Source: Chrysemys picta bellii (Eukaryota). From it: a stretch of DNA of 64,000 bases. Positions 30,101 to 62,990 of the stretch are shown piece after piece; the first letter of the stretch is position 1; each line of letters opens with the position of its first letter. Location: the NCBI RefSeq assembly GCF_011386835.1, contig NC_088814.1:3968001-4032000 (forward strand). The letters are read 5' to 3'. The notes under the pieces are model-generated. The model saw only the letters and a list, made by a program, of their open reading frames with translations, was not told the DNA's origin and did not search any database. Position numbers and translations under genes: made by a program.

Positions 30101-33100
30101 TCTGTGCTGTCACACAGATGGGGGGGGACAGTCCCGCAGGGCTAGAGCGTGTGCTCTTCACGCTGGCTGTTCCTTGGGCGGGAGTCCTGACTCCCAGTCT
30201 TGCGTCTCCCCCCTCGCTGGCTGCTTGCACCCCAGATCCCGTGATGCTGCGGGTGAGCGGGTGATCTCCACACCGGGTCCCTCGATCCCCATTCAGACAG
30301 GGCCCCGGGGAGCGAGGGCTCAGCCAGAATCGGAACAGCTGGATTCCCACCAGGCTTCCAGGCGATTAGCTCCAGAGCTGCGGCCTCGGCCGGCTGCCGG
30401 CAGCCCCGGGCTCTGTGTGTGTGTCAGGTCCTGTCTGGGGCTAATCGCCTTGTGCTTGGTGTCTCTCCTGGTTTATTATCCCGTGGGTTGGGGACCCACG
30501 TGCAGCCCGGAGCGGCCTCCGGGGCAGACGTGCTGGGGAGAGACAGGAGACTCGGGGCCTGTGTCGCTGTGGGAAGAGCAGTCACTGGGCTGGGGAGATC
30601 CTGCACCCCAAGGGATGTGGGGGGGGGGAGGAGTGAGGCTGTCATAGTGGGGTTGGGAAAAGGCATATGGGAAAGGAGGGAGCCATGAATATGGGTGTGG
30701 CTAAAGGGTGGAGGTGTGGCCATGGGAAGTGGGTGTGGCTAAAGGGTGGAGGTGTGGCCATGGGAGGTGGGTGTGGCTAAGGGGAGGAGGTGGAGCTATG
30801 AGTGATAATATTAGTGCCCCAAAGGGTTTTAACCCTTGGTTGAGATGAAAAAGGGAGGAGCCAGTGGAAGCTATGGGGGTGGAGCTATGGGATGTGGGGG
30901 TGGAGCTATGGGTGGGGGTGGGGCTATCGGTGGGATTGCCTTATCCCTGGCAGGTACAGCCGGTCTCCTAAAGGTTCAGAGCTGGATCCTGGCTCTGCAC
31001 CTGCCTTGGCTCCCAGGGAGGCGAGAGCCCCAGCCGGGTTGGGAAATGCGTGGGGCTGAGTCCCTGGCCTGCTCTGGGGTGCAGGAAGCGCTGAGATCCC
31101 GGCTGGCCCGTGGGCAGATGCTGGGGCCGGGGGTCCCTGCAGCCCTACGTAGATCAGCTGTACCTCACGAGCAGGGGGCTGAGGGGGACGGGGTGGGGTA
31201 AGGGATGGGAACTGAGGGGTGCAAGCCGGGGAGGCAGGACCTGCTAACCCATTCCTCTGTGGAGGGGGGAAGGGAGAGGCCTTTGCAGCGGAGGGAGGGC
31301 TGGCGCCTCCCCAACATCACCACGTGGGGTTTCTTTTGCCCCCCAGCCTTCCTCCCCCTGCCCTCGTGCTGGCTCTGTAGGGGAGGGGGATTAACAGATT
31401 CAGCAAAAACATCTTCAAACCCACATTACGGCTTTTGCCGCCGGAGGCTGGTGGGGGGGATTCCGGCCCGGAGAGCAGGATTCAGAGCCATGGCTGGAGG
31501 TTGGTGCCCTCCCATGCCTCCCCCCCCCCCCCCGGGGTTACTGGATCAGTAGCTCAAAGCGGGGGGGGGGGATGACTCTGCGCAGCCCTGGTGGGCTCCA
31601 TGGCCCGGTGACTAAGGCTGGCACATCTCTCCCCCTCCCCCCCGCCTATGTGCCTCAGCACAAGGACCCCCTCCCCCCCCCAGCATGAGAGGCGAGCGTG
31701 GCCTCCATGGCCCATTTACTCCCCAGCCAACAAGGGGGGCAACTGGCCCCGCTGTGGTGCTGGGGGTGCCTGGGATGGGACAGAGACACCCCCTGACCCT
31801 GCGGTTCCCCCCTTCTGTCAGATGGGCTGGGACCCGCATGGGAGGAGGCTCCATGACCCATTTCCAGCACCCCCCAACTGCTCCAGGCCATTCACACCCC
31901 CTCTTGAGTGTTTACCAGCTGGGCAGCGACGCCCCTGGGGCCCGTTCCCGGGGGACCCTGGCAGGACGCAGCCCCGGGAGGGGGGTCGCAGAGAGAGGGA
32001 GTTGGGCTGAGAGGCTGGGCTCAGGGTGGAGGTGGGGTAGGGGGCAGCAGTCAGAGCCCCCGTGCACGGTGCTGCCCCCGCCTCGTGACGCTCCTTGGGT
32101 CTCTGCTCTGCTTCCCCCCCAGATGCAGAGGCTCAAGCGCTCGCTGTCCCTCAAGACCATCCTGCGTAGCAAGAGCGTGGAGAACTTCTTCCTGCGATCC
32201 AACAGCGAGCTCAAACTCCCCTGCGAGGTGCTTCTGAGCCCCCCGACGCCCTTGCCGCCCCCGTCCCCCCCGCCGATGCCCACCGAGGCCGTCCTGCCCC
32301 GGGCCGAGCACTCGCCCATCGCCTGCCACCGGGCCCTGGCGCCCCTCAAGCCCATGCGAACGCACAGCTTTCAGGAGCACGTCTTCAAGAAGCACAGCCC
32401 ATGTGAGATGTGCCACCAGCTCATCGTAGGTGGGTGCCGCGGGGACCCCGTTCCCAGGGCAGGCTGCTACTCCGGCCTCGGCCAATGCCCCCGATCCCTG
32501 CCCAGAGCCCCCTGCTTTCCCAGCCTGGGCACCTGCATCCCCATCCAGCTCCGCCTCTGCCCCTTGATCCCAGCCCACAGCCCCCTGCTTTCCAGCCTGG
32601 GCTCCCCCATCCCCATCCAGATCTGCTGATGCCCCTCAATCCTGCCCTGAAGCCCCCCTGCTATTCCAGCTCTGGGCTTCATTCCTCACCCTCCTTGAGC
32701 TTGCAGAGAGGTTCCCCTCTGGGTGGGGCTCTTTCTGACACCGCCCCTCCACACCCGCCCCGCAATGTACACAGGACTCCGATCCTGCCCTTTCCTTCCC
32801 GGGTCTCACCCCAAGGTCTGGCTCTGCTCCGAATCCTGGTTGCTTTCGTGCCTCTCCCACAGTGAGACCCCCATGGGGGATTTTCTACATCCTTCCCCTG
32901 CCCCATCCCCACCCCCGGGGCTGGGGCCTCTCTCACCCACCCCCTGTGCGTGCTTGGTGTGTTGCAGGCAATTCGAAGCAAGGCCTGCGGTGTAAAACGT
33001 GCAAGGTTAGCGTGCACCTGTGGTGCTCGGAGGAGGTCTCGCACCAGCAGTGTCCCGGCAAGACGGTAAGCGCCCGCCGAGCTGGTCCCAGGAGTGGGGG

Positions 33101-36100
33101 GGCAACATCACCCTCCTCTGTCCCTGGCGGGAGGATAGCTGGGTGCACGCCACTGCCCTCTACTGGCCGGAACATCACACCCACGTGCACGTCTGCAGAC
33201 CCGGAACGCTACCGCCCCCTGCTGGCACCGCTGCTTGCCAAGCGCGGGGCGCTACAGTGGCTCAGCCGGGCCAGGAGTTTTGCTCTGGGAGCTCAAGTCC
33301 TGACTCCGAGTCAAACTGCCGCCCCCATGTGCCTGGTTGTATCTTTCTGGCCCCTCGGGGGGCGGGGGGAAGTGAGGCTGGTCTGGAGGTGCCTGAGTCT
33401 GGCTACCACAGCAGTGGGGTGGGTGGGTGCCCCGCTGGCGAGGGGGCCACAGGCAGACCGAGGGGCTTGTCCGCCATCCCCAGTCCCGGTTACATTTCTC
33501 TCCCTCTTTCCTTCCTTTCCTGCCAGGCCACCTCCTTCCGGCGCAACTTCAGCTCCCCCCTCCTGGTGCAGGAACATCAGCAGAACAGCTCCAAGGAGTC
33601 ACCCCCTGCAGGTGAGACCCCCCTCCCCGTCCCACTGGAGTAGTTGCGGGGTGGGGAGGTCTTGAGCCATACGAATCCTCAGGTTCCCTTTATCGGGATC
33701 TACCAAATGCCAGCTGCAGCAGGGGGCGTGACTGGCTCTGGGAAGGGGTCTCTGTGGGTGGTGCTGGAGCAGTAGGGGGGACCCCAGGGATGTTCTTGGG
33801 CTACTGATCCCTTCGGGGGGGGAAGGGAGGGGGATTACAGCGAGGGTGACCAGATAGCAAGGGCAAAAAATCGAGATGGGGGTGGAAGGGTAATAGGCAC
33901 CTATATAAGACAAAGTCCCAAATCTTGGACTTGCCCCTATAAAATTGGAACATCTGGTCACCCTAATTACAGCCCTTGCAAGGAGAAAGGGTTAAGGGGA
34001 TCCTAGGACCACCAGTGTTAAGCCGCACCCCTTATGTCACAAGCTCCTCCCTCTTATGTAGTAAGCTCCTCCCCCTGGTGCAGGGTCTCCCAGCACATGG
34101 TTGGGTTACAGGCTGGCTTGGCATCCCTGACCCCACCCCGTCTCCACAGGCCCCAGCGGGAGGGTGGATCCCATCTACGAGACACTGCGCTACGGCACCT
34201 CGCTGGCTCACCTGAACCGCTCCAGCTTCAGCAGCACCTCGGAGTCGCCCACCAGGAGCCTGGTATGTGCCAGGGCAGGACGGGGGCACTGAGCCGAGCC
34301 CGGGCATGTCACGGAGCCCCCACCATGCGGCGCCACTGGACAGCACAGGCTGGGGGCCAGAGAGACACGCAGGGTCTGTCTGCGCCCAGCAGCCTCCAGA
34401 GAGAATCCGCCTCGGCTCTTGTTACAGCCCATCCTGACTCTGGGGTGGGCGAGGGTGACATGCATTCGGCTGGACCCTCTAGAGGAGGGCGAGGATGGCA
34501 CTCGGGGATGGGAGATTCCTGGGGGAGAGGGGTGCAGCTGGCTGGGGAGGAGCGGGGGCGGTGCTGGAACAGCCCATCCAGTCTCCGCCCAACCTCCGGT
34601 GTCTCCGTCTTCCCTAGAATGAGAAGGACGAGGCCGGGGAGGACGCAGACGGCAGCGCGGAGGAGAGCCACGGTGACAGCGGTAAGCGTGGGGAGGGGTA
34701 TGGGGCGGGGAGGCTGCTGTCCCTTTAATAGAGCCCACACCCGGCTCCCCCCCTCCAGGGCCTTGGCCGTGGGGCGGGGACGTGGGGCTGTCGGGGGAGC
34801 CAGCCCGGCTGATTGTCTCCATCTCTCTCAGCATTCACGGCCCCCCCCGAGGGCGAAAGTCCAGGCTCAGAGGAGAAGAGCCCTGAGCAGGAGGTGAGCT
34901 GCCCCCCTGGTCCCCCCATAGCTAACCCCGGCCTCCTTCCCCCACAGTCGCTCCCCAGGCGCCTCCGCTGCCCCGAGCCGGCTCCCGTGTCTCCGCCGCC
35001 CCTTCCCACGTCCTCCCGCTGCCCCGAGCCGGCTCCCGTGTCCCCGCCGCTCCATCCCTTGTCCTCCCGCTGCCCCGAGCCGGCTCCCATGTCCCCGCTG
35101 TCCCATCCCACGTCCTCCCGCTGCCCCAAGCCGGCTCCCGTGTCCCCGCTGCCCCATCCCACATCCTCCCGCTGCCCCGAGCCGGCTCCCATGTTCCCGC
35201 TGCCAGGTTCTCCTGCTGTGCCGAGCTGGCTCCCGTGTCTCCACCGCCGCGTCCCATGTCCTCCCGCTGCCCCGAGCCGGCTCCCGTGTCCCCGCTGCCC
35301 CTTCCCACGTCCTCCTGCTGCCCCGAGCCGGTTCCAGTGTCACCTGAGACCCCCCTTAAAGCCCACCAGCTGCATTGAGCTGCCCCCAGACCCTCCCCCA
35401 AGGGCCACGACTGGCTCCTTCAACTGACTCTGAGTCGGCTCCGTTCCTGTTCCTTGCAGCCCTGACTCCTTCCACTTGCCCCTGGGGTGGGGATCCCCTG
35501 CTTCCCTGAGGTGCCCTCGGACCCCAAAGGACGACCTGACCAGCTCCCTGCCCCAGGGCGTGTGGGTGGGGATGGGGCGCGGGCCCATGGCAATGGGGCT
35601 GGAGTGCACAGGTGTAGGCGATGGGGCTGGGGCACAGGAGGGCACTGGCCGCGGGCGATGGGGCGAGTGGCCGTGGGCGATGGGGCGCGGGCCATAGGGC
35701 TGGGGCATGGGGCTGAGGTGCGGACCATGGGCGATGGGGCACGGCCCGTGGGCGACGGGGTTTGTGGCCGTGGGCGATGGGTGCGGGACGTGGGCGATGG
35801 AGTGAATGGCTGTGGGCGATGGGACGCGGGCCATAGGGCTGGGGCATGGGGCTGGGGCACAGCCCATGGGCGATGGGGCACGGCCCGTGGGCGATGGAGT
35901 GAGTGGCCGTGGGCGATGGGCGCAGGCCGTGGGGAATGTGAGTCCAGCTCGGGCCCATCCCTGGCCGGCTGTGACTCTGGGCTCGGGGCCCTCGCTGTCC
36001 TTCGCTGCAGGCTGCCGGGGGCTCCTCGCGGAAGGACGTCTCCCCCATGTACTCCTACGTGGCTCTCTACAAGTTCCTGCCCCAGGAGCACAATGACCTG

Positions 36101-39100
36101 CCCTTGCAGTAAGTGCCCGTCCCCTAGGGGGCAGCTATGAGCATGGGGGCAGAGCGCGCTGGCAGAGGGTCTTGCGAGCCAGGCGTGTTGAAGCCAGGGG
36201 GAAGGGGGGGCTGCCCTGAGTCCCCGTGGGGACTGGTGTTGGCCCCTCACTGACTCTGAATGGGCTGGCGGGGGGAGGGTTGGGCCAGGCCGATGCGCCA
36301 GGGTCTCGGCTCCAGGCTCGGCACAGCGAAACCCACCCTGGCTGCCCTGGGGGTGGTGCTGGTAGGACACCCCGGCCACAGGGCGGAGAATGGGGGGCAG
36401 CAGTCTCCTCGCCAGCTGCCCTGTGGTGGGCAATGATGCGGGGACGGGAGGCTGTACGGGGCTGGCATATCTTCCCTCCCCCCCCGATTAACATCACCCT
36501 GTCCCCTATCTCTGTCCCCCCAGACCCGGAGACAGGATCATGCTGGTCGATGACTCCAATGAAGACTGGTGGAAGGTCAGTGAGCGCGCCTGGGGGCTGT
36601 GGGGAGGGGCTGTGGGGTTGGGGTTGGGGGTCGGGAGGGGTTGGGGTCGGGGAGGGTGCAGAGGCTGAGGGACAGCAGGGGGGCGGGCAGGGAGGGCTCA
36701 GGGGTTTCTGGGGTCTTGGAGAACAAGGGCAGAGATTTCAAAAAGGGGCCCCCCAAGGCCACATCAGTCCCCCAAAGCAACCTCCTGCTCTGCTCCACTC
36801 CCCCTGGCTGGCCCAGCTGGGGGCAGGGCTCCCGCATTTCTGCAGCAGTGAGGAGCGGCTGGGAAGGAAATAAATGGGGCCATAAATCTATCTCGGAAGC
36901 CAGCCAGCGAGATGCTGCAGCATCCTCACATGTAGCCCCCCTGGCACAGGGCGGAGGTTGGAGGGGCAGACTGACTGGGGGGAGGGGCAGATTGGGGGGG
37001 TGGAGAGGCAGATCCAGCGTGGGGGGTGGGGAGGGTGGAGGGGCAGATCGAGGGGGGGGGTGTAGGCATTATCGGAGGGGTGGAGGGGCAGATCGAGTGG
37101 GGGGAGGGGCAGATTGAGGGGGGGGGTGGATGGAGGGGCAGATCGAGCAGGGGGGCATGGTGGGGGGGTGCAGGGGCAGATCGAGCCGGGCTGGGGCGGG
37201 AGGAAGGGTTAACTCGGGACATGGTGACTGGGAACCGGGGTCGACACCCCCTTCACCCTGGTGTCGCCTCCTGCACTCAGCGGGGGTCCCTGCCCCCCTG
37301 GGCTTCACTGGCGCCCCCCCCGTCCTGGGTGAGATCCCCCCCCCATCGCCCTGGCAGGCCGAGTCCCCCCTGCTGTGCCCCGTCCCCGGAGCAGGTGGGC
37401 AGGCGCCCGGCTCCACGCACGGGCACACGCACATTGGGCTGCCTCTCCCGGTTGCCATGGGGACGGACCCCCCAGCTGACGTGGCAGCTCTGAGCGTGGG
37501 TGCGAGACGCGTGGCTGGGCCTGGCCCCTGCCAGCAGGGTGGGGTCGGGGGCAAACCCCACAGGCCTCAGCCGGGTGCGCTGCTTTCCTGCCCTTCCTCG
37601 CCTGGCACGGCCGCCCCGTGTTAACGTGTTAGGGGGGGCGGCAGGTGTCAGGCAGCGCCATGTGTGTGTGTGTGTGTGTGTGTGTTGGGCTCTGTGTGTG
37701 TGGTGTATGTGTGTTGGGCAGCGCTGTGTGTGTGTGTTGGGCAGCGCTGTGTGTGTGTGTCTGTGTTGGGCGGTGCAGTGTGTGTTGGGCAGCGCTGTGT
37801 GTGTGTTGGGTGGTGCTCTGTGTGTGTGTGTGTGTGTGTGGTGTATGTGTGTTGGGCAGCGCTGTGTGTTGGGCAGCGCTGTGTGTGTGTGGTGTGTGTG
37901 TGTTGGGCAGCGCTGTGTGTGTGTGTGTGGTGTGTGTGTGTCTGTGTTGGGCAGCGCTGTGTGTGTGTTGGGTGGTGCTCTGTGTGTGTGTGTGTGTGTG
38001 GTGTATGTGTGTTGGGCAGCGCTGTGTGTTGGGCAGCGCTGTGTGTGTGTGTGTGTGGTGTGTGTGTGTCTGTGTTGGGCAGCGCTGTGTGTGTGTTGGG
38101 TGGTGTTCTGTGTGTGTGTGTTGGGCGGCACTAGTGTTGCGCTGTGTGTGTGAGATGCAGCTGAACTCTCCCAGGCGATGGAGCCGCAGTCTAACAACCT
38201 CCCATCTCCCATCCCCCCCTGCCTGGGAAGCTCCTTCTCTGGGGCCTGCCCTCCGCACACCCCCCAGGTCCTCACCCCCCCGCCCCCAGGTCCTCCTCCC
38301 CTGGTTAAACTGGCCACGCCCCCCTTTGGCGGGTGATGCCAAGAGGGACCCTCCAGCGCGACCAGGCGATGGGGGGGGGTAACGGGCCATGGAGTCGCTG
38401 ACCGTGAGGGCTGGGGTCCCGGCCTGGCTGGGAATTGGAGCTCAAGGCAATGCCGGCTGGGGGCGCCAGGCTGCCCCGTAGAGGCACTGACCCATCTGCC
38501 CCCCTGGTCCTGGAGCCCAGAGCCGCCAGCTCCCTGCTCCGAGCCCAGCCCAGCCAGAAGCTATGGGCGTCTTGGGGCTCTGCTGGCGTCGGCCCTGTGC
38601 CCAGCCCAGGGGTCTCCATGTGGCGGGGCAGCGGGGGGACGGTTGGCAGGCGGGGTCCGGGGGGCCGTCGACCTCACGCCCCCAACTTGCCATTGCAGGG
38701 CAAGATCGGCGACCGGGTGGGCTTCTTCCCGGCCAACTTCGTGCAGAGAGTGCGCCCGGGCGAGAGCGTCTGGAAGTGCTGCCGGCCCTTCTACGGCAAC
38801 AAGGAGCAGGGACAGATGAGCCTCAAGGAGAGCCAGGTATGGGGGGGGGGCTGTGCTGGGGAGGGGTCTGGCCTGGCTGGGGAGGGCAGTGCTGGGGGGC
38901 AGAGCAGGGGAGGTCTCGGCGGGGCAGTCTGTGCTGGCAGAGGGGGGCTGGGCTGGGCTGCAGAATAAGGGGGGGCTGGGCTGGGGGGGAAGGAGGTGGG
39001 GGGAGTCTGTGATGAGGGACAGAGTGGGACGGGGTGTCTGCTGGTGGGGGTCTATGCTGGGGGCATTGGGGGGGCTGTATTGGGGGACCGAGCAGGACGG

Positions 39101-41097
39101 GGGGTCTGTGCTGGGCAGTCTATGTTGGGGGCATTGGGGGGTCTGTACTGGGGGACAGAGCAGGACGGGGGGTCTGTGCTGGGCGGTCTATGCTGGGGGC
39201 ATTGGGGGGTCTGTACTGGGGGACAGAGCGGTCTGTGCTGGGGGGCAGAGTGGTGGGGATCTGTGCGGTGGGGAGTGTAGGACCTGTGCTGCGGGGTGCA
39301 GGTGACCCCAGTGGGGAGGCCAGCGACGTGCTTAGATGTCCCCGAGGCCAGTGGGTCTAGTCTCGCCTCCCACCCCCCTGGGACGCTGGCGCTCGAAGGA
39401 GGCTGCCATGGATCCGGGACCGGGACTCTCCATGTGCTCCGGCCCCTCCAGCTCCCGGGGCCGCGGGCGGTCGCCCTGCCTCTTCTCCGGGGGATGTTGG
39501 AGCCGAGCCCAGGCCGCGGCAGATCCCTGAGCCTCCCCAAAGGAAGGTGTGTCGCCTGTCCCCATGCTCCACCTCCTGCTGCGCCCCAGTCCCTGCCGCC
39601 CGCCGTCCTGCCGCCCAGAGCCAACAGCTGGCTCAGCCCGTCTCGGGCCGAGGCGCCTGTCAGATGCACGCGGGGGCCCGAGTGTTTGGGCTGGAGACTT
39701 CGCCGAGAGCTGCCGGGGGGGGGGGGGGGGTACAGACCCTTCGGACCAAGCCCTGGGCTGCAGTCCAGCTCTGTGGCAGTTTCCCAGATGATCTGCTGTG
39801 GGGGGGCCCAGGGCTCTTCCAGGCCCCTAGGAAGGCTCCTGACCCCTTTCCCTGTCTGGAAAGGGGCTGCCCCCTCCCTCCGCTCCGCTCAGCTGGGCTT
39901 GCTGCTCCTGCTGTTAAACTAAGCAGCTGAGGGTCTCCTGGGGTCCGGAACTGGAACACGAGAGCCTCGTAGAGCAGGAACCTTGGGCCGGATCTTTAGG
40001 TGGGTCGATCACCCAAGGCCTGTTGACTCTGATGCACCCGTGCGGATTCACCGCAGCCAGGGATCCGGCCCGTTGAGTTCAATGGAGCGAAGCCGATTTG
40101 CCCCAGCTGGGGATCCAGGCCCAGAAAGCAACGCTACCGCATCTCGTTTCGCTGTTGGCTCCGAGTGGAGGGACGTTTGCTGGGGGGACGTTTCTGTCTC
40201 TGCCCAGCGCCCGCAGCCCAGGGGACAGGCGAGAGCCCAAAGCAGGATGGTTGCTGGGCTTTGAGAGCGAGCCAGACCTAGGCCAGGCACTGGGAGCAGC
40301 AGCCTGGACCCTGCTGGCTTCATGTCTGAAGCTGTTACTTGGCAGCCGGGACCTGGGCTTTGATGGCACAAACTCGCCCGCGCTCAGCGCTTCGCTGGCG
40401 TCAGCCACCTGCTCGCTCCGTTGCTGCAGGGAATGAGTCAATCTTGCCAGGCNNNNNNNNNNNNNNNNNNNNNNNNNNNNNNNNNNNNNNNNNNNNNNNN
40501 NNNNNNNNNNNNNNNNNNNNNNNNNNNNNNNNNNNNNNNNNNNNNNNNNNNNNNNNNNNNNNNNNNNNNNNNNNNNNNNNNNNNNNNNNNNNCAAAGCAT
40601 TTCTTCTAGCAGATTTGCTTTCTTGTGGTACCTTCCTCCATTTACATCGCTGAGCGCGAGAGCAGAATTGGGCCCCTCGTTCTCTGTCTAGGCCCCGGTT
40701 ACTCCATTCCTCCCCCTGGCATCTGACTGTATCACCCGCCCCGGGACCTGAACTCCCGCCCTGCGGAGCTCAGCACAGCAATTAGCCTTTACAGCTTGAT
40801 CAAAGGACCAGCCCTTCCGCGGGCTCCTGATCTCTGGCTCAGGCACCGATGGGCGTGTGGGGGGGAGGCTGCATGCTACTGGCTCTGGCATGTGTCGAGT
40901 GTGTCCCGTTCTCAGCTGGCTTGTGCCGGATGCCTGGGTCCTGCTGACGTCATGCCCTACTCTCTCTCTCTCTCTCTCTCTCTGTCCCTCAGATCTGCGT
41001 CGGCGTGGGGAAAAGCAAGGAGAATGAGGGCTTCCTCAAGGTGACCAGCGGCAAGAAACGAGGCCTGGTGCCCGCCGACGCCCTGACGGAAATCTGA
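21199..41097 (+). CDS. STAC2: SH3 and cysteine-rich domain-containing protein 2 (C1 domain plus tandem SH3), 403 aa
   Basis: Exons: 21199-21288, 32123-32429, 32968-33065, 33527-33611, 34150-34262, 34618-34681, 34832-34893, 36011-36108, 36524-36575, 38699-38836, 40993-41097 (1212 nt, GT-AG, phases consistent). Translation [149 protein letters not shown] matches the recalled STAC2 sequence along its length. Confidence 0.96.
28950..29080 (-). mobile_element. MIR/CORE-SINE-like fragment
   Basis: gatggggaaactgaggca...gagctggga..gaacccaggagtcctg. Confidence 0.6.
30684..30800. repeat. Short tandem array, 37-38-bp unit, about 3 copies
   Basis: catggga(a/g)gtgggtgtggctaaagggtggaggtgtggc. Confidence 0.85.
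33842..33965. mobile_element. hAT-type MITE with 8-bp target-site duplication
   Basis: Terminal inverted repeats agggtgaccagat...atctggtcaccct, flanked by ATTACAGC at 33834-33841 and 33966-33973. Confidence 0.85.
34960..35340. repeat. Minisatellite, 51-bp unit, in STAC2 intron 7
   Basis: ctgccccgagccggctccc.. copies at 34968, 35019, 35070, 35121 and 35172 (one reads ctgccccaag), then decayed copies. Confidence 0.9.
35560..35930. repeat. Degenerate compound tandem repeat (gtgggcgatgggg-type units)
   Basis: Repeated gggcgatgg units with a higher-order repeat of about 139 bp (gccatagggc at 35691 and 35830). Confidence 0.8.
36960..37190. repeat. G-rich degenerate tandem repeat (ggaggggcagatcgag)
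   Basis: About 8 diverged units. Confidence 0.75.
37660..38152. repeat. (TG)n-rich compound satellite in STAC2 intron 9
   Basis: TG runs interrupted by ttgggcagcgctg and ttgggtggtgctctg. Confidence 0.95.
39040..39245. repeat. Tandem repeat, 68-bp unit, about 3 copies
   Basis: ctatg(c/t)tgggggcattgggggg at 39052, 39120 and 39188. Confidence 0.85.
40453..40592. other. Assembly gap (140 N) in STAC2 intron 10
   Basis: Run of N. The flanking exons join in frame, so no coding exon is needed inside the gap. Confidence 0.99.
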
Positions 41098-55706: not shown

Positions 55707-55712
55707 TTTATT
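55707..55712 (-). terminator. Polyadenylation signal AATAAA of the p43 gene
   Basis: tttatt on the plus strand, about 380 nt after the stop codon. It is the first canonical hexamer noticed in a GC-rich 3' region. Confidence 0.65.
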
Positions 55713-56091: not shown

Positions 56092-59000
56092 CTAGGCCAC
56101 CTCCTGCGGCCTGGTGGTCGGGGGCAGCTGGAAGAGGGCACTGAGGTTCACCTCAGGCTCCACAGCATGGCGGCCGGGGCGCTCGTTGAAGAGCCCCGAC
56201 AGGTCGCTCTCCAGCTTGGCCTTGACGCGCAGGAGGAGCGTGTGGCCCAGGCGCCCGGGGCTGTCCTCCCCCACCGGGAAGCCCGAGCGGCTGCGCTTGA
56301 GTCGCACATAGAGCTTCTGGCTGAAGAGCTGGTGCAGGTTCTCCTCCACCAGCACCCGCCGCCGGCTCTTCCTGGTGGGCCGGCAGCGCTGCAGCTGCAG
56401 AGAGATGAGTGGAGCTCAGGGCGTTGTTCCCCCTCGGAGCTCCAGCGCCTCAGGGGCTCCCCTGCCCCAGGCCCTGCTCCCCAGCTCAGCCATGCCCCAT
56501 TATAAGGCACCCCCCACCCCCAGCAACCCCTGCCCCTCCTCGACAAGCTTCTTTTGTAACCGGTGCCAGTGGAGCCACACCCCAGAGTGCTCAGGGGAGA
56601 TGTTCCCCCAGGGCAGCTCCTATGGTGGTTTGATGCTAGAGGGTCTTTCCCAGCTAACCATGTTTGAGCAATGGGGGGGTCATGCCCCACTTCCCACTGA
56701 GGTAGAAGGGTGGAGCCCCCCCCCCCCCCCCCATTTGGAATCAGACCCCAGCTTAAGTGAGATTTTGCTACTTCAGGAAGGGCCTGTGATGGACCCGCTC
56801 TGGCATGGGCCAATTACCTTCAGTTTCTTCTTTGTGGGGTCATGGACCGTCAGGTGCCGGATTAGACTCTCCTACCAAGGAAAGGAGTGTAAGTCGCCCA
56901 GCACAGACCCCTGCTCACCCTGGTTAAAGACACCCCCCCCCCACCCCAAAAAACCCACCACACCCTTATTCAAATATTTTAGGGTTACTGGGTATTCCAG
57001 TGCAGTGCCTCATGGGAGTTTAGTTCCATTTCCTCCTGATCCCTGTCTCCACTATGGGCCAGAGTCACCTGCTGAACTACATCTCCCATGATGCAACTGC
57101 TCCCCTAATCATTGGGGGAAGATTGGTGCATCATGGGAAATGTAGTCCACCCAGGGAGCCCTGCCTAGAAAGGCCAATAGGAGCATGAGGATATGGAACT
57201 ACAATTCCCATGAGGCACTATGACAGCATTTCCCAAGTTAAATATTTGGGGGGTTGATTTTTTGCCAAGTCAAAAAAATTGATCAAGTTAAAAACCCTCT
57301 TCCCCATAGGAAAAAAAAAGCCTATTTTCAGCCAGCTCCACACACAAACCCTTCGGCTGCCGCTAGTAGAAATGCCTCGAGCCAGCTCTATGCCCCACAG
57401 CTCCCCCACATCCCCAAAGCCTAGAGACCCTGCTGCTTCCTTACCCGCATGGCAAAGGCCTTCTCACAGCCAGCGAAGTAGCAACGATACTTCAGCAGCT
57501 GCAGATGCACCTTCCGGATGTGGCTCTCCAGGTTGAAGATGGTGGTGAAAGAGACCTGGCAGTCAGCTTTGGGGCACGCCCACGTGGGCTTCGGCAGCGC
57601 CCGCTTCTGCCGGCTGTGGAAGGACTTGTGCCGCCGCAGGCCGCCTGGCTTCTTGAAGGTCTTCGGGCACAGCTGGCACTTGTACTCCACTGGGCAGGAG
57701 AGCACAGGCTGTGCTCCCAGACAGAACCAACACCCCAATCGCCCTGGTGCTTCCCAGGAGTTTGGGGATTCATACCCCCACCCCCTCCCCAGAGAGGATG
57801 GGGCGGTGGAGGGTGGCCACTTCCAGCTCATTCTCAGCAGAAGTTACTTGGGAGTTGAGGGGTGGTTGGAGCCCATCTGATGGGACAAGTTCTACTGGCT
57901 GGAGTGACACAGGACTGCCCCAGGCCAGCGGAATCAGTATCCGATGGCCCTCACGGAATCCAGAGCCCCAAGGAAGGGCAGAGGCAGCACCTGAAAGCCC
58001 TCACCTACCCCAGGAGGGCCACAGGTCTGAGAAGGATGGGCAGGTTATTGAATAGCCCATCCAGAGAACAGCAGTGGCTACAGCAGGGCAGCCTTAGGAC
58101 TCAATTGTCTCTGCTCGCCTGGGGGAGGCGGCCGATCCCGCTCTTAGCACCAGCCTCCAAAGCGAGGTGGAAGCCCCACCAGGAGAACATGGGGCAAGGA
58201 TGCCAGGTGTGGCCAGACCAGCCAGGACTGAAGGTCAGCAGACACTGGGGTTTGGCCTACTGCCAGGTCCCCCATCGTTTGCCTCCACTATGACCGCCCC
58301 CCACTGGTGATGCCCAGAGAAAGGGAGACCTTGATTAGGAGAGAAACGAAGCCCTGGGCTTCTCAAGTCACATCTCCTCCCTAGCCACTGCATGGAGAAG
58401 GGAGACCTCCCCACCACCTGCTGAGGTGACCTCCCAGCCTGCTGATATTACAAGCTAGCGATGTTTGGTTTGGGATGCCACCCATTCAGTGTGTGCCCAG
58501 GGAAATGCAGGCAGACTGGTATCCGGTACCCAGATTGCATGGGGGCAAGGGGCTCCCCCACACACCTGCCTTACCAGGATGCTGCTGCAGGTGTTTCTGA
58601 TGCGCCGTCCAGGTGGACAAGACAGACCCGCAGTCTGGCTTGGGGCACAGGTATCCTGGAAGAGGGACAGGGAGGAGGATCAGCAGGTGGAGAGAGACGC
58701 TGAACTGGGCTGGAAGGAGCCACCCCAGGACCACAGGCGTTTCCAAGTGGCTGCTGAGCCCGGATGCCATGTGCTCCGAGCCACACACCAGCAGGGCACC
58801 TCCCACCACGGCGTTCTGCCCAGTGCTAGTTCTCCTCCAGGCACTGCCACGCTGTGGCTAGGGAGCAGCTGTGCCAGTGAGAAGCAGGAGCGGTCAGGGA
58901 TGTCCCCATCCCAGCCTGGGGAGGGGGGTGCAAAGGTCCACAGTGGACGGGGAGCCACAGACTGTCAAGCCAGCAACAACAGCCTCCCATTCAGCAGGCC

Positions 59001-62000
59001 CCCAACACTCCCCCACCCACCCCAGACAAAGCCGCTCACCGGCATGTTTCCTCTGGTGAGCTTTCCTCTTGGCAGCGCTGGCAAACTTCATGGTGCAGCC
59101 GGGCTCCTGGCACCTGAATGAAGCACACCCCACTCGTGAGGGGAGGGGGCCATGGCTCTCCCCATGTCTGAAAGGAGATGTCCCAGGCTAACCCAGAGAG
59201 ACCCAGCCAACGGGTGGCAGTGAATTGAGAAGGGGAAAGGCCAGCGTATCGGCTACGCCAAGCTGGAGAAGGCCACTGGCCTGGCCAGCTTCAGTATCCG
59301 GCCCGGGACAGCGCCCAGTACCAGATATGGCAAATCCTCTGCCCTCAGCAGCCCTTGGCACAGGCCAGCTCAGCCAGCCCTCTCGCATTGGGAGGTGTTG
59401 CTTGACACCACACCGGGGGGGGGGGGGGGGGGGGGTCTCCTGTCTCGTGGCATCGGCCACCCCCAACCTGAGGGGCACAGGAGACACTCACACAAACAGC
59501 AGCACCGTGGTATGCTCGGTCCAATGGGCCCGGAGGGCCTTCTTTTTCCTGAAGGTGCTCTCACAGCCTTGGTAGCTGCACTGGAGGGGCAGGAGAGACA
59601 AGTCAACCAGACCCAATTCTCTGCCCCCCTCCCCCCCCCCCTGCACTTTGATCCCCCTCCCCTCCAGCCACCCAGGGCCCCTCATGTATGGGACCATGCA
59701 GGTCTGGGGGGCTCTGGAAGGGTGTTAGCAGCATGGAGGCCCCAGAGGTTGATCAGGGAGCTCCAGGCAGTCGACACCTGGGACAGGGAATCAAACATCT
59801 GCCGGTGACATTTAGAGCCTCCAGCACAGAGGGGAGAATTTCTCCTCTCGCCGTTAGAGATTTTCAGGCAGTTTGAGCCGACCAGCGACCCTGCAAATGC
59901 TACGGGCTCCAGGGCTGCAAGGCCAGGCAGGGTCTGAGAACAGACCTGCGGCTCCAGCCCACGCTGGGCTAGGCAGGGGGAACAAACCAGGCTCGCTGGC
60001 ACTGTAAGGGCAGAGGGGAATCGCTTCTCTGGGGAGGATCATGTCACACTCGTGCCAGCGGGGCTGTGCCTAACCCAGGCACCTGGTGCAGGGGCCCCTT
60101 GCTAGCCCCCTTGGGCTAGACCTTCCCTTGCCATCTTACAGGGCAGCCAGAGCCGTGACCTCTGGCGCCCTCGTGTGTTCACAGAAGGAAGAGACTCCAC
60201 CAGCTTCAGGAGACCCAGAATCTAGTCCTGCCCCCAAGTCCCACTGTTCACAGCTTGGCTAATGCTGACATCCCCCCACCGAGACCCATACACCAGGAGA
60301 GGGGCACTGGGATGATCCCCACCCCCTCTGCCAAGGCTCACGCCCCATCAGGGTCACCCAACAGATGAAGACCTGCCCCACACAGGTGCTGCTCCAAGTC
60401 ACAGTTAGGAGAAGGGGAGTCAGCCCAAAGAAGGGACTTGGTTGGCATCACATCCTGTGCCTAGTGGGCTATCTGGGCTACCAGAGTGATGGCCCTCCAT
60501 GCCCCCCCGAGTGAAAGGGATGGCCCAGGCATCAGCACGGCTGACCTCAGACCCAACAGGAGTCGGTTCAAGAGCCCATTGGAGCCACCTGTGACCAGAC
60601 CCCCCCATTCCCACCTCACTCACTGTTCTCCCTGACCCAACACCCCACCTCGTTAACATCTTGCCACCAGCATGCACTACCTGGAAGGACTTCGCCACAC
60701 CATGCTGGGCCCTGCAGTGCTTTGGCAGGTGGTTCTTGGGCACAAAGGCAGATTTGCAGTCCACATCCAAGCGGCTGGAGAAATGTGGAGACACGGCTGA
60801 TAGACAGGTGTTCGCTCCAAGCCAGCTGGCATGAGCCCGGCTCAGCACAGCCCAGGCCAGTTAGCCAAAGGAAAGGGGTGTGTAGTTAAGAACATAAGGC
60901 AGGGATAGGTGCCCCGAGGGGGGGGGGGAAGGGGGAGGAAGAGAAGACAAGAGAAGAGGAGGGGGTTCTGGATACTAGATCAGCCCACAGCCTGGCCAGG
61001 TCAGTGACAGGCAGCACAGCCGAGTGGGTCTGGCACTGGACTGGGAGTCAGGAGACCATGTTCTACTCCCAGCTCTGCCACTGAGCTGCTGTGTGACCAC
61101 AGGCAACTCCCTTCCCCTCTGTGTGCCTCAGTTTCCCTTTCCCCTTGGTCAGTCTTGTCATTTACACTTATCGCCTCCAGGGCAGGGATTCTCCCGCTAG
61201 GTGTTAGGGCAGCGCCTGGCATAAATGGGGCCCAGATCTCACTTGGCACCAGGGCAATCCTACCTCCTGTTTCCCTCCCCAGAGGGCTCACTCTGAGAGC
61301 CCCACTAGGCATCATCAAGGCCCATTAGACCCCCTTGGGGGGGGGGGGCTGATCAATAGGAGGGAGGAGAGAGAAAGGACAAGCTCCCTCCCCCCAGCCC
61401 TACCTGTTCAGCCTGGCATCACCCTGCTGCTGCTTGGGCATCTGCCGAGAGCTTCTGCGACGGAATCTCTTGCCACGGCCAGCCTGGTCACTCAGCGGAG
61501 CCGTCTGCAGAGACATGCCTTGGTGAGGGACTGCACCACCCTCCCAGGCCCCTTCACACTCAGGGACAGGCCACATACAGCATTACAATAATCAAGGAGG
61601 TGGGGGGGGGGGGAAGGGAAGGATAAAAGGCATCCAGACAAACATGGGGCTTAGACAAGACACCCAATGCAGGAGGGCTGGTAGCCAGGCACTGGGGTGC
61701 AATCCAGCCATGGCTTTGCTACCCAGGAGTGCCACAGCCCAGGCTTAGAAAGGGTTAATCAGCATATCCCATTCTGAAGCAGCTCCACCCTACTAGATCT
61801 GTTACTTCTAGGATGAAGAGAAGCAGCCAACCCACCTGCTTCAGACCCCTGCTCAGACAGGCCAGCCATGGGCTGACTCAGGCAACTCCAGTGCTCCTTG
61901 CCACAAGGAGAGCAGGTAAGAGGCTCTTCGGAGCCACTGAGCAGGACAGGTCTCTCCCCACCTTCCTAAAGGGGAGCAGGTCCCCCTCTTACCTCCCCCA

Positions 62001-62151
62001 CATGCACAGCAAGATGCTTCTGTAACCTCCTCTCCTTGCCAAACACAGCACCACACTCCTTGTGGGGGCAGGCAAAGAGGTCAGAGGCCAAAACACCCCC
62101 AAGGGAGGTGCTGCTTCCCCCAGCCTCCTCCTGCAGCCTTGCCTCAGCCAT
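56092..62151 (-). CDS. 42sp43: p43 5S RNA-binding protein (42S RNP particle protein, thesaurin b; TFIIIA-like nine-finger protein), 399 aa
   Basis: Coding exons on the minus strand: 62151-61993, 61504-61404, 60774-60681, 59580-59492, 59113-59040, 58655-58575, 57689-57445, 56871-56818, 56394-56092 (1200 nt, GT-AG, phases consistent, TAG stop). The fingers are C-x4-C type: finger 4 has [11 protein letters not shown], finger 6 has TWT, finger 9 has [16 protein letters not shown]. The C-terminus [34 protein letters not shown] matches the recalled Xenopus p43 tail, not TFIIIA. Confidence 0.9.
56960..57350. repeat. Palindromic, probably non-autonomous DNA-transposon-like repeat in a p43 intron
   Basis: Imperfect inverted repeat of about 57004-57098 against 57123-57220, in AT-richer flanks. 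It carries four ACTACAnnTCCCATGAnGCA-like motifs. The outer boundaries are approximate. Confidence 0.6.
61011..61140 (+). mobile_element. MIR/CORE-SINE-like element in a p43 intron
   Basis: ggcagca..agtgg..gcactggactgggagtcaggaga..gttctactcccagctctgccact..gtgtgacc..gcctcagtttccc. Confidence 0.7.
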
Positions 62152-62239
62152 GGAGTTGGTGTTTTGCAGCACCCACACACCCCCTCTCTCTTTGCCTGGA
62201 CTACCCTATAGTCCCTCAGTTTGCTGCTGAGCTCCCATC

Positions 62240-62328
62240 TTTATACTCAGCCTCCCACAGGAGCTGCAGCTGACTCCCATCCCATCAATCAGGGGCTGGG
62301 GGGGGGAGCAGGGTTAATATATTTGCAT
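62240..62328 (-). promoter_or_regulatory. Candidate proximal promoter of the p43 gene: octamer, E-box and TATA
   Basis: On the minus strand: ATGCAAAT at 62328-62321, CAGCTG at 62267-62272 and TATAAA at 62245-62240, about 90 nt upstream of the ATG at 62151 (context ctccATGG). Confidence 0.55.
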
Positions 62329-62353: not shown

Positions 62354-62990
62354 GAATCATAGAATATCAGGGTTGGAAGGGACCTCAAGAGGTCATCTAG
62401 TCCAACCCCCTGCTCAAAGCAGGACCAATTCCCAGCTAAATCATCCCAACCAGGGCTTTGTCAAGCTGGGCCTTAAAAACCTCCAAGGAAGGAGACTCCA
62501 CCACTTCCCTAGGTAACGCATTCCAGTGTTTCACCACCCTCCTAGTGAAATAGTTTTTCCTGATATCCAACCTGGACCTCCCCCACTGCAACTTGAGACC
62601 ATTGCTCCTTGTTCTGTCATCTGCCACCACTGAGAACAGCCGAGCTCCATCCTCTTTGGAACCCCCCTTCAGGTAGTCGAAGGCTGCTATCAAATCCCTC
62701 CTCATTCTTCTCTTCTGGAGACTAAACAATCCCAGTTCCCTCAGCCTCTCCTCATAAGTCATGTGCTCCAGACCCCTAATCATTTTTGTTGCCCTCCGCT
62801 GGACTCTTTCCAATTTTTCCACATCCTTCTTGTAGTGTGGGGCCCAAAACTGGACACAGTACTCCAGATGAGGCCTCACCAATGTCGAATAAAGGGGAAC
62901 GATCACGTTCCTCGATCTGCTGGCAATGCCCCTACTTATACAGCCCAAAATGCCGTTAGCCTTCTTGGCAACAAGAGCACACTGTTGACT
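62354..62990 (-). mobile_element. 5'-truncated CR1 LINE (3' end of ORF2 plus 3' UTR)
   Basis: ORF 62436-62948 reads [72 protein letters not shown], a typical CR1 ORF2 C-terminus. The element ends in the CR1 tail ..ccctgatattctatgattc. Confidence 0.95.

Follow-up and report, generated by a model that had tools for sequence, protein, structure and literature searches.

The 64,000 nt of the Chrysemys picta bellii genome analysed here (contig NC_088814.1, positions 3,968,001 to 4,032,000; below, the window, numbered from its first letter) contain the orthologue of 42Sp43, a protein also called P43 or thesaurin b and known as the oocyte paralogue of TFIIIA; the gene occupies 56092-62151 on the minus strand. 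It is intact, spliced, transcribed and under selection, and the turtle genome also has an intact gene for its partner, 42Sp50, and an oocyte-type gene for 5S ribosomal RNA (rRNA). It is textbook knowledge that frog and fish oocytes store 5S rRNA and transfer RNA (tRNA) in 42S particles; frog P43 is a member of the 42S particle, is expressed only in previtellogenic oocytes and binds 5S RNA, not the 5S gene. Within the searchable literature, 42S storage is described for frogs and fish only, and no paper on 42Sp43 or P43 in any amniote or reptile was found. A 42S-type store in turtles and crocodiles is plausible, since P43 is selected and transcribed, 42Sp50 is intact and an oocyte-specific 5S gene of the nucleolus organiser region (NOR-5S) is present. 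RefSeq already contained the P43 sequence, and published work had reported 42Sp50 and NOR-5S from turtles and crocodilians. What is new is the restricted distribution of P43 in amniotes, the evidence for its selection and transcription, a fossil second zinc finger throughout turtles with lineage-specific erosion of fingers 1 and 3, and the link that joins P43, 42Sp50 and NOR-5S, each of them reported separately.

The P43 gene and its transcripts

The window protein is 42% identical to Xenopus P43 over 377 residues and is colinear with it through nine finger positions and the C-terminal tail. When the 100 residues of exon 9 that lie outside the fingers were used as a query against 1.84 billion representative proteins (HMMER), 11 matches were obtained and all those that are named or recognisable are P43s. 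They include the Xenopus P43 cluster (P25456, P25066, "42S P43"), a cyprinid P43-like protein and sea-turtle proteins, together with a short fragment resembling the crocodile tail and several short unnamed fragments with the same motif. This P43 C-terminal motif (VEE.L..LF ... EPEVNLS.LF) has residues that do not vary among 32 P43s ranging from shark to turtle. Full-length queries with the sea-turtle and crocodile orthologues returned only P43, P43-like or unnamed orthologues, from turtles, Crocodylus, amphibians, ray-finned fishes and a shark, and TFIIIA of other species was absent from the homology-search matches. Because full-length Xenopus P43, as a genome query, matched poly-zinc-finger genes in overwhelming number, reciprocity was judged by the tail, the exons and matches in the PDB; fingers 7-9 match only paralogous fingers there, because the PDB holds TFIIIA fingers 1-6 only. 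The window sequence is not new, as RefSeq already annotates the gene as "P43 5S RNA-binding protein-like", a name that it uses in many turtles and Crocodylus, and the window protein is that of XP_065433553.1 (Chrysemys picta bellii) save for a 3-residue alternative donor. An earlier note on this DNA had proposed that an amniote here carries a 42Sp43 gene and that the protein, although without a functional description in amniotes, may have names in databases; the tail matches, which are to P43s only, and the colinearity with Xenopus P43 bear out the first point, and the RefSeq name, with no reptile paper in the searchable literature, the second.

The gene was rebuilt from the window sequence as nine exons with a coding sequence of 1200 nt (399 aa), in which all eight introns are GT..AG and the phases are consistent. 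Exon 1 (61993-62151) encodes the initiating methionine and finger 1, with its C-C-H-H ligands intact, and exon 2 (61404-61504) the fossil finger 2, with S, R, P and Q at the four zinc-ligand positions. In finger 3, encoded by exon 3 (60681-60774), the first ligand is Arg (codon CGC, 60773-60771) and not Cys. Exons 4 (59492-59580) and 5 (59040-59113), both represented in RNA contigs, encode the intact fingers 4 and 5, and exon 6 (58575-58655) encodes a TFIIIA-type finger 6 with the conserved Trp. Exon 7 (57445-57689) encodes fingers 7 and 8 together with the N-terminal half of finger 9, whose other half is in exon 8 (56818-56871), and exon 9 (56092-56394) encodes a basic stretch, then the P43-specific motif, and ends in the stop codon TAG (56094-56092). 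A motif scan places a TATAAAG box at 62239-62245, 94 nt upstream of the ATG, and, by sequence only, a ATGCAAAT octamer at 62321-62328, 177 nt upstream; the AATAAA nearest to the stop codon, at 55707-55712 and 382 nt downstream, is a candidate poly(A) signal. All these elements are on the minus strand.

All eight predicted junctions are present exactly in spliced contigs of the public runs X1, X2, X4 and X9, which come from three studies and two turtle species, and the joint of exons 1 and 2 (61504->61993) is seen in all four. Aligned to the locus, the junctions have CT..AC ends on the plus strand, the contigs extend past the ATG into the 5′ untranslated region, and exon depth in runs X1 and X2 is ~1000-1400 versus 0-6 over most intron sequence. 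Exon 7 has a single 100% match in the genome, which identifies the spliced form as RNA and excludes a retrocopy. Spliced P43 RNA is present in runs of three studies; three further studies of the same species contain almost none. RefSeq isoforms X1 and X2 gain 18 residues through an upstream exon 5 acceptor (59114-59167), and isoform X3 gains GKA through an exon 6 donor 9 nt further on (58566-58574); neither variant is represented in the joints from these runs. The main transcript also excludes a degenerate C..C stretch at ~61836-61938 that was considered as an additional exon; the minor joint 61504->61836 occurs in one run only, at a depth of 7 versus ~1400. Intronic C/G homopolymer runs (56720-56735, 59415-59440 and 59624-59641) create false contig joints, for example 56733->59624.

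With these data, most of the structural claims made for the gene at the outset can be kept. The complete 399-aa open reading frame (ORF) with canonical splice sites is reproduced by the rebuilt model, and all eight of its junctions are found in RNA. A TATA promoter agrees, by sequence, with the TATAAAG at 62245-62239. For the polyA signal, the AATAAA at 55712-55707 is a candidate. The description of the gene as intact applies to the ORF, which is complete; it does not extend to the fingers, two of the nine being damaged (S-R-P-Q in finger 2, Arg in finger 3).

Decay of the N-terminal fingers and constraint on the rest

The four zinc ligands of each finger were tabulated in 24 P43 sequences. 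In the anamniote P43s (frogs, salamander, caecilian, bowfin, teleosts and shark), C-C-H-H is present at every finger in the model; the shark model is without finger 6. Finger 2 is dead in all 14 turtle sequences, with three or four ligands gone. In Crocodylus finger 2 is kept, and finger 1 and one ligand of finger 3 are lost. Finger 3, R-C-H-H in the window protein, has decayed independently in Chelonia, in Emydura, in soft-shelled turtles and in the Chrysemys/Trachemys/Malaclemys group; its first ligand is Cys in Emys and in an older Chrysemys protein (P0043), and Arg in Trachemys and Malaclemys. The ligands of fingers 4-9 are intact in Crocodylus and in every turtle but for the Caretta and Lepidochelys models. 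In these models finger 7 is S-C-H-R and the tail motif is reached via a shifted frame or an odd splice, so that P43 may be decaying in both, as judged from predicted proteins and not from DNA; on the same kind of evidence, Chelonia P43 is better preserved.

The window protein therefore shares with Xenopus P43 the nine finger positions, their spacing, the TFIIIA-type finger 6 and the C-terminal motif, and differs from it in having a finger 2 without zinc ligands that is predicted to be unfolded, a finger 3 without its first Cys, and an insert of ~25 residues in the tail ahead of the motif. An AlphaFold run with a 32-sequence alignment predicts fingers 1 and 4-9 to be beta-beta-alpha units, with a predicted local distance difference test score (pLDDT) of ~64-87, residues 52-92 (finger 2) to be without secondary structure (pLDDT <50), and the tail to be mostly disordered with one short helix. 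Nine fingers that all bind zinc, as in Xenopus P43, are not found here, as fingers 2 and 3 fall short, and because these two have lost ligands we file the gene as an orthologue and structural variant and not as a plain copy.

TFIIIA (GTF3A) is a paralogue of the window gene built on the same nine-finger plan. Fingers 4-7 of TFIIIA are its main 5S RNA-binding fingers, with fingers 4-6 solved on 5S RNA (PDB 1UN6/2HGH), and its N-terminal fingers bind box C of the 5S gene. The fingers decaying in the window protein are the N-terminal ones, the counterparts of the box C binders. Unlike TFIIIA, the window protein is without a TFIIIA-like finger 1 and has the P43 tail. Which fingers P43 needs is in effect the subject of a natural deletion experiment, made by the turtle-wide loss of finger 2 and by the erosion of fingers 1 and 3.

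Selection was evaluated on a codon alignment of eight species, turtles and a crocodile, consisting of the window gene and seven orthologues mapped exactly to genomic loci; Emydura P43 was available as a protein only, without a genomic record. All eight have nine exons, and exons and phases are kept from Pelodiscus to Crocodylus. In codon models on the species tree, omega for the whole gene is 0.26 and differs from 1 at p = 5e-45 (likelihood-ratio test). Omega is 0.17 for fingers 4-9 (p = 1e-30) and 0.18 for the tail (p = 1e-19), versus 0.49 for the N-terminal 117 residues (p = 5e-5); pairwise estimates agree with these models. P43 is a constrained protein-coding gene, not a pseudogene, with constraint relaxed across fingers 1-3. 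Its conserved core is fingers 4-9 plus the C-terminal motif found only in P43, and the N-terminal fingers have been released from constraint.

42Sp50, NOR-5S and the distribution of P43

The earlier note had also proposed looking in the genome for 42Sp50 and for an oocyte-type 5S gene, and both are there. A genome-wide Pfam scan with the EF-Tu C-terminal domain located the EEF1A relatives: EEF1A1 (contig C3), EEF1A2 (C13), an inverted pair (C23) and a more divergent gene (C2). The last, on the plus strand at C2:272798200-272801958, is the 42Sp50 orthologue; it is intact, its 7 coding exons being free of stops. Its product is 78.6% identical to Xenopus 42Sp50 (P17506) versus 69.6% to the turtle's own EEF1A1, and it falls, apart from canonical EEF1A, inside a 42Sp50 clade with 100/100 support whose members are shark, coelacanth, bichir, stickleback, frog 42Sp50, tuatara and turtle. 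The tuatara protein (Sphenodon punctatus, UniRef A0A8D0GRJ4) groups with those of turtles at 100/100; in the published survey 42Sp50 is present in turtles and crocodilians and not in lizards, snakes, birds or mammals, and Rhynchocephalia are listed as unknown (PMC9403048). The inverted EEF1A-like genes, at C23:12441943-12442170 (minus strand) and C23:12457708-12457935 (plus strand), lie ~16 kb apart and are ~88% identical to EEF1A1 and to each other, with a stop in one tblastn match; the pair might encode an oocyte form of EF-1alpha, or might be a duplication of which one copy is decaying. Runs X1-X3 contain the largest share of both P43 and 42Sp50, and 42Sp50 is found in RNA-type runs of at least six studies. 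A structure-based prediction of a complex of turtle 42Sp50 with the P43 tail scored 0.00 and gave no answer; it counts neither way.

The best Rfam 5S matches in the genome are identical copies spaced ~15-20 kb apart. In the 45S ribosomal DNA (rDNA) repeat on contig C61, which was checked, the 5S copies lie antisense between 28S and 18S. Canonical 5S genes form a 1.2-kb tandem array at a separate place and differ from the rDNA copies at 22-23 of 119 positions. The 5S gene embedded in the rDNA is the NOR-5S gene described in Trachemys, where it is transcribed in oocytes only and from where its oocyte specificity is taken here; among vertebrates, NOR-5S is confined to turtles and crocodilians (PMC8789306). 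The turtle oocyte 5S gene is thus embedded in the NOR, and that of Xenopus forms a separate tandem array. In previtellogenic Trachemys oocytes, NOR-5S rRNA is in the top, light fraction of gradients, and the authors, citing the frog 7S and 42S particles, suggest storage in light ribonucleoproteins (RNPs) and name no binding protein (PMC8789306). Single NOR-5S-type copies also occur away from the rDNA contigs, at C1:275883523-275883641, C10:51434415-51434533 and C3:18523080-18523198; two have the same sequence as the rDNA copies and the one on C3 differs by 3 changes. Dispersal of the gene, or the way the assembly was put together, may account for them.

Among amniotes, protein homology searches find P43 only in turtles and a crocodile; P43 of bird, squamate, tuatara or mammal was absent from the full-length protein searches with sea-turtle and crocodile queries. 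This is the same distribution as that published for 42Sp50 (PMC9403048). Birds and squamates are also without oocyte rDNA amplification (PMC8789306). The matching distribution of P43, 42Sp50 and NOR-5S with rDNA amplification is the strongest circumstantial argument for a storage RNP of P43 and 42Sp50 in turtle oocytes. P43 was considered in neither the 42Sp50 (PMC9403048) nor the NOR-5S (PMC8789306) study; its retention, selection and transcription join three observations into one testable system and make it a candidate protein for the NOR-5S light RNPs.

A possible 5S rRNA store in turtle oocytes

That turtle P43 has a frog-like storage role, holding 5S rRNA in an oocyte RNP, is the reading that we consider moderately probable. 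In growing oocytes P43 would bind 5S rRNA through its central fingers, by analogy with fingers 4-7 of TFIIIA, and would keep it stored in a cytoplasmic RNP, much as frogs and fish do. The 42Sp50 orthologue, carrying tRNA, would probably join this RNP, and NOR-5S rRNA, the oocyte-specific type that turtles and crocodiles have, may be among the RNAs stored. That turtle P43 is expressed in oocytes, binds 5S rRNA and forms a particle would be expected from the likeness to the frog system: as for the anamniote 42S RNP (P43, 42Sp50, 5S rRNA and tRNA), both protein genes are intact and an oocyte-type 5S gene is present, the likeness here being one of genes and RNA. The suggestion from which this work started, that the reptile keeps the 42S system or a modified form of it, stands in so far as the orthologue is spliced and selected, 42Sp50 is intact and the oocyte-type 5S gene exists; turtle P43 is not, however, a plain copy of the frog protein, having a fossil finger 2 and, in this species, a finger 3 short of one ligand. 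More tentatively, and with considerable doubt, we suggest that turtles and crocodilians alone among amniotes keep the whole storage system (P43, 42Sp50, oocyte 5S and rDNA amplification) with its 5S-binding subunit remodelled: the N-terminal fingers may have become dispensable after NOR-5S replaced the oocyte 5S gene, with the six-finger core and tail kept, and P43 may be the protein of the Trachemys light RNPs.

Several observations weigh against a frog-like store. Finger 2 is lost in turtles, with one finger 3 ligand also gone here, whereas the anamniote P43s examined keep the ligands of every finger in their models; should frog P43 depend on its N-terminal fingers, its turtle counterpart would have to bind in another way or to another target. 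As RNA resembling 42Sp50 is also present in runs almost without P43 (X23 and others of study P8), the two are not strictly co-expressed. Spliced contigs prove RNA and not ovary, and the RNA label of the libraries is itself presumptive. Nine residues differ between the window protein and P0043, the older protein of the same subspecies, including Arg/Cys at the first ligand of finger 3 (60771-60773) and Thr/Ile at residue 210 (57658-57660); both residue-210 alleles are present in RNA contigs (57659 G/A, X1 versus X2), and at five of these nine sites the window has the derived allele. The tail differs from that of Trachemys by 10 non-synonymous changes and 1 synonymous change, and recent amino-acid turnover among emydids is fairly high. 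The finger 7 losses and shifted tail frame of the Caretta and Lepidochelys models argue that P43 can be dispensable in some turtles.

Part of this evidence would fit a P43 that is functional but has shifted its job, forming no frog-type 42S particle; acting without 42Sp50, it might bind 5S rRNA on its own in a small RNP of the 7S kind, or bind some other RNA. A finger 2 that is dead in all turtles, the independent losses of fingers 1 and 3 in several lineages and Crocodylus, the higher omega of the N-terminal third than of fingers 4-9, and 42Sp50-like RNA where P43 is almost missing all point in this direction, as does the top, light fraction in which Trachemys NOR-5S rRNA is found, in what its authors term light RNPs (PMC8789306). 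Against it, the P43-specific tail motif, which TFIIIA does not have, is as constrained as the finger core and invariant from shark to turtle, which argues that a P43-specific function is kept, and P43 and 42Sp50 share their unusual amniote distribution. We regard a shifted job as unlikely, although more probable than the two readings that follow.

It is very improbable that P43, although transcribed, is turning into a pseudogene whose frame survives only through the slow sequence change of turtles. Fossil and damaged fingers, the many residue differences between the two Chrysemys versions and the damaged look of the Caretta and Lepidochelys models are what such a gene might display, but neutrality is rejected over turtles and crocodile for the gene as a whole and in each of its three regions, the nine exons and their phases persist from Pelodiscus to Crocodylus, and all eight junctions are used at high exon depth.

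The remaining concern is one of identity. Finger 6 matches the Pfam family TFIIIA_zf-C2H2 (PF22110) with 29.6 bits at a cut-off of 27, and the nine finger positions are TFIIIA-like. GTF3A is, however, a separate locus on contig C1 near 309.95 Mb, whose finger-1 exon has Xenopus TFIIIA (1TF6) as its best PDB match, from residue 1; for the finger-1 exon of the window gene, generic zinc fingers rank first. The TFIIIA-like finger 1 and N-terminus expected of a single TFIIIA gene are thus found at the C1 locus and not in the window. With exon 7 only 41% identical between the two loci and a tail that matches P43s only, there is next to no chance that the window gene is GTF3A itself or an unrelated C2H2 zinc-finger gene misread as P43. 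The earlier note had named a best reciprocal match to GTF3A or another zinc-finger protein as one of the outcomes that would overturn its proposal; the searches returned P43 or P43-like names and unnamed orthologues, with GTF3A elsewhere, on C1.

The rest of the window offers a few minor features. On the plus strand, at ~31685-39000 and upstream of P43, there are exon-like ORFs that we take, as candidates only, to encode C1 (phorbol-ester type) and SH3 domains of a STAC-family-like protein; four neighbouring ORFs, scanned separately, had no Pfam match. On the minus strand, ~190 nt upstream of the TATA box, a 170-aa ORF at 62436-62948 likewise has no Pfam match and resembles the 3′ end of a CR1-type long interspersed nuclear element. 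The stretch at ~37280-38390 is of low complexity and rich in CA/TG, and gives rise to spurious His/Thr-rich or Cys/Val-rich ORFs on both strands. The ORF at 40079-40600 spans a gap of ~140 N bases.

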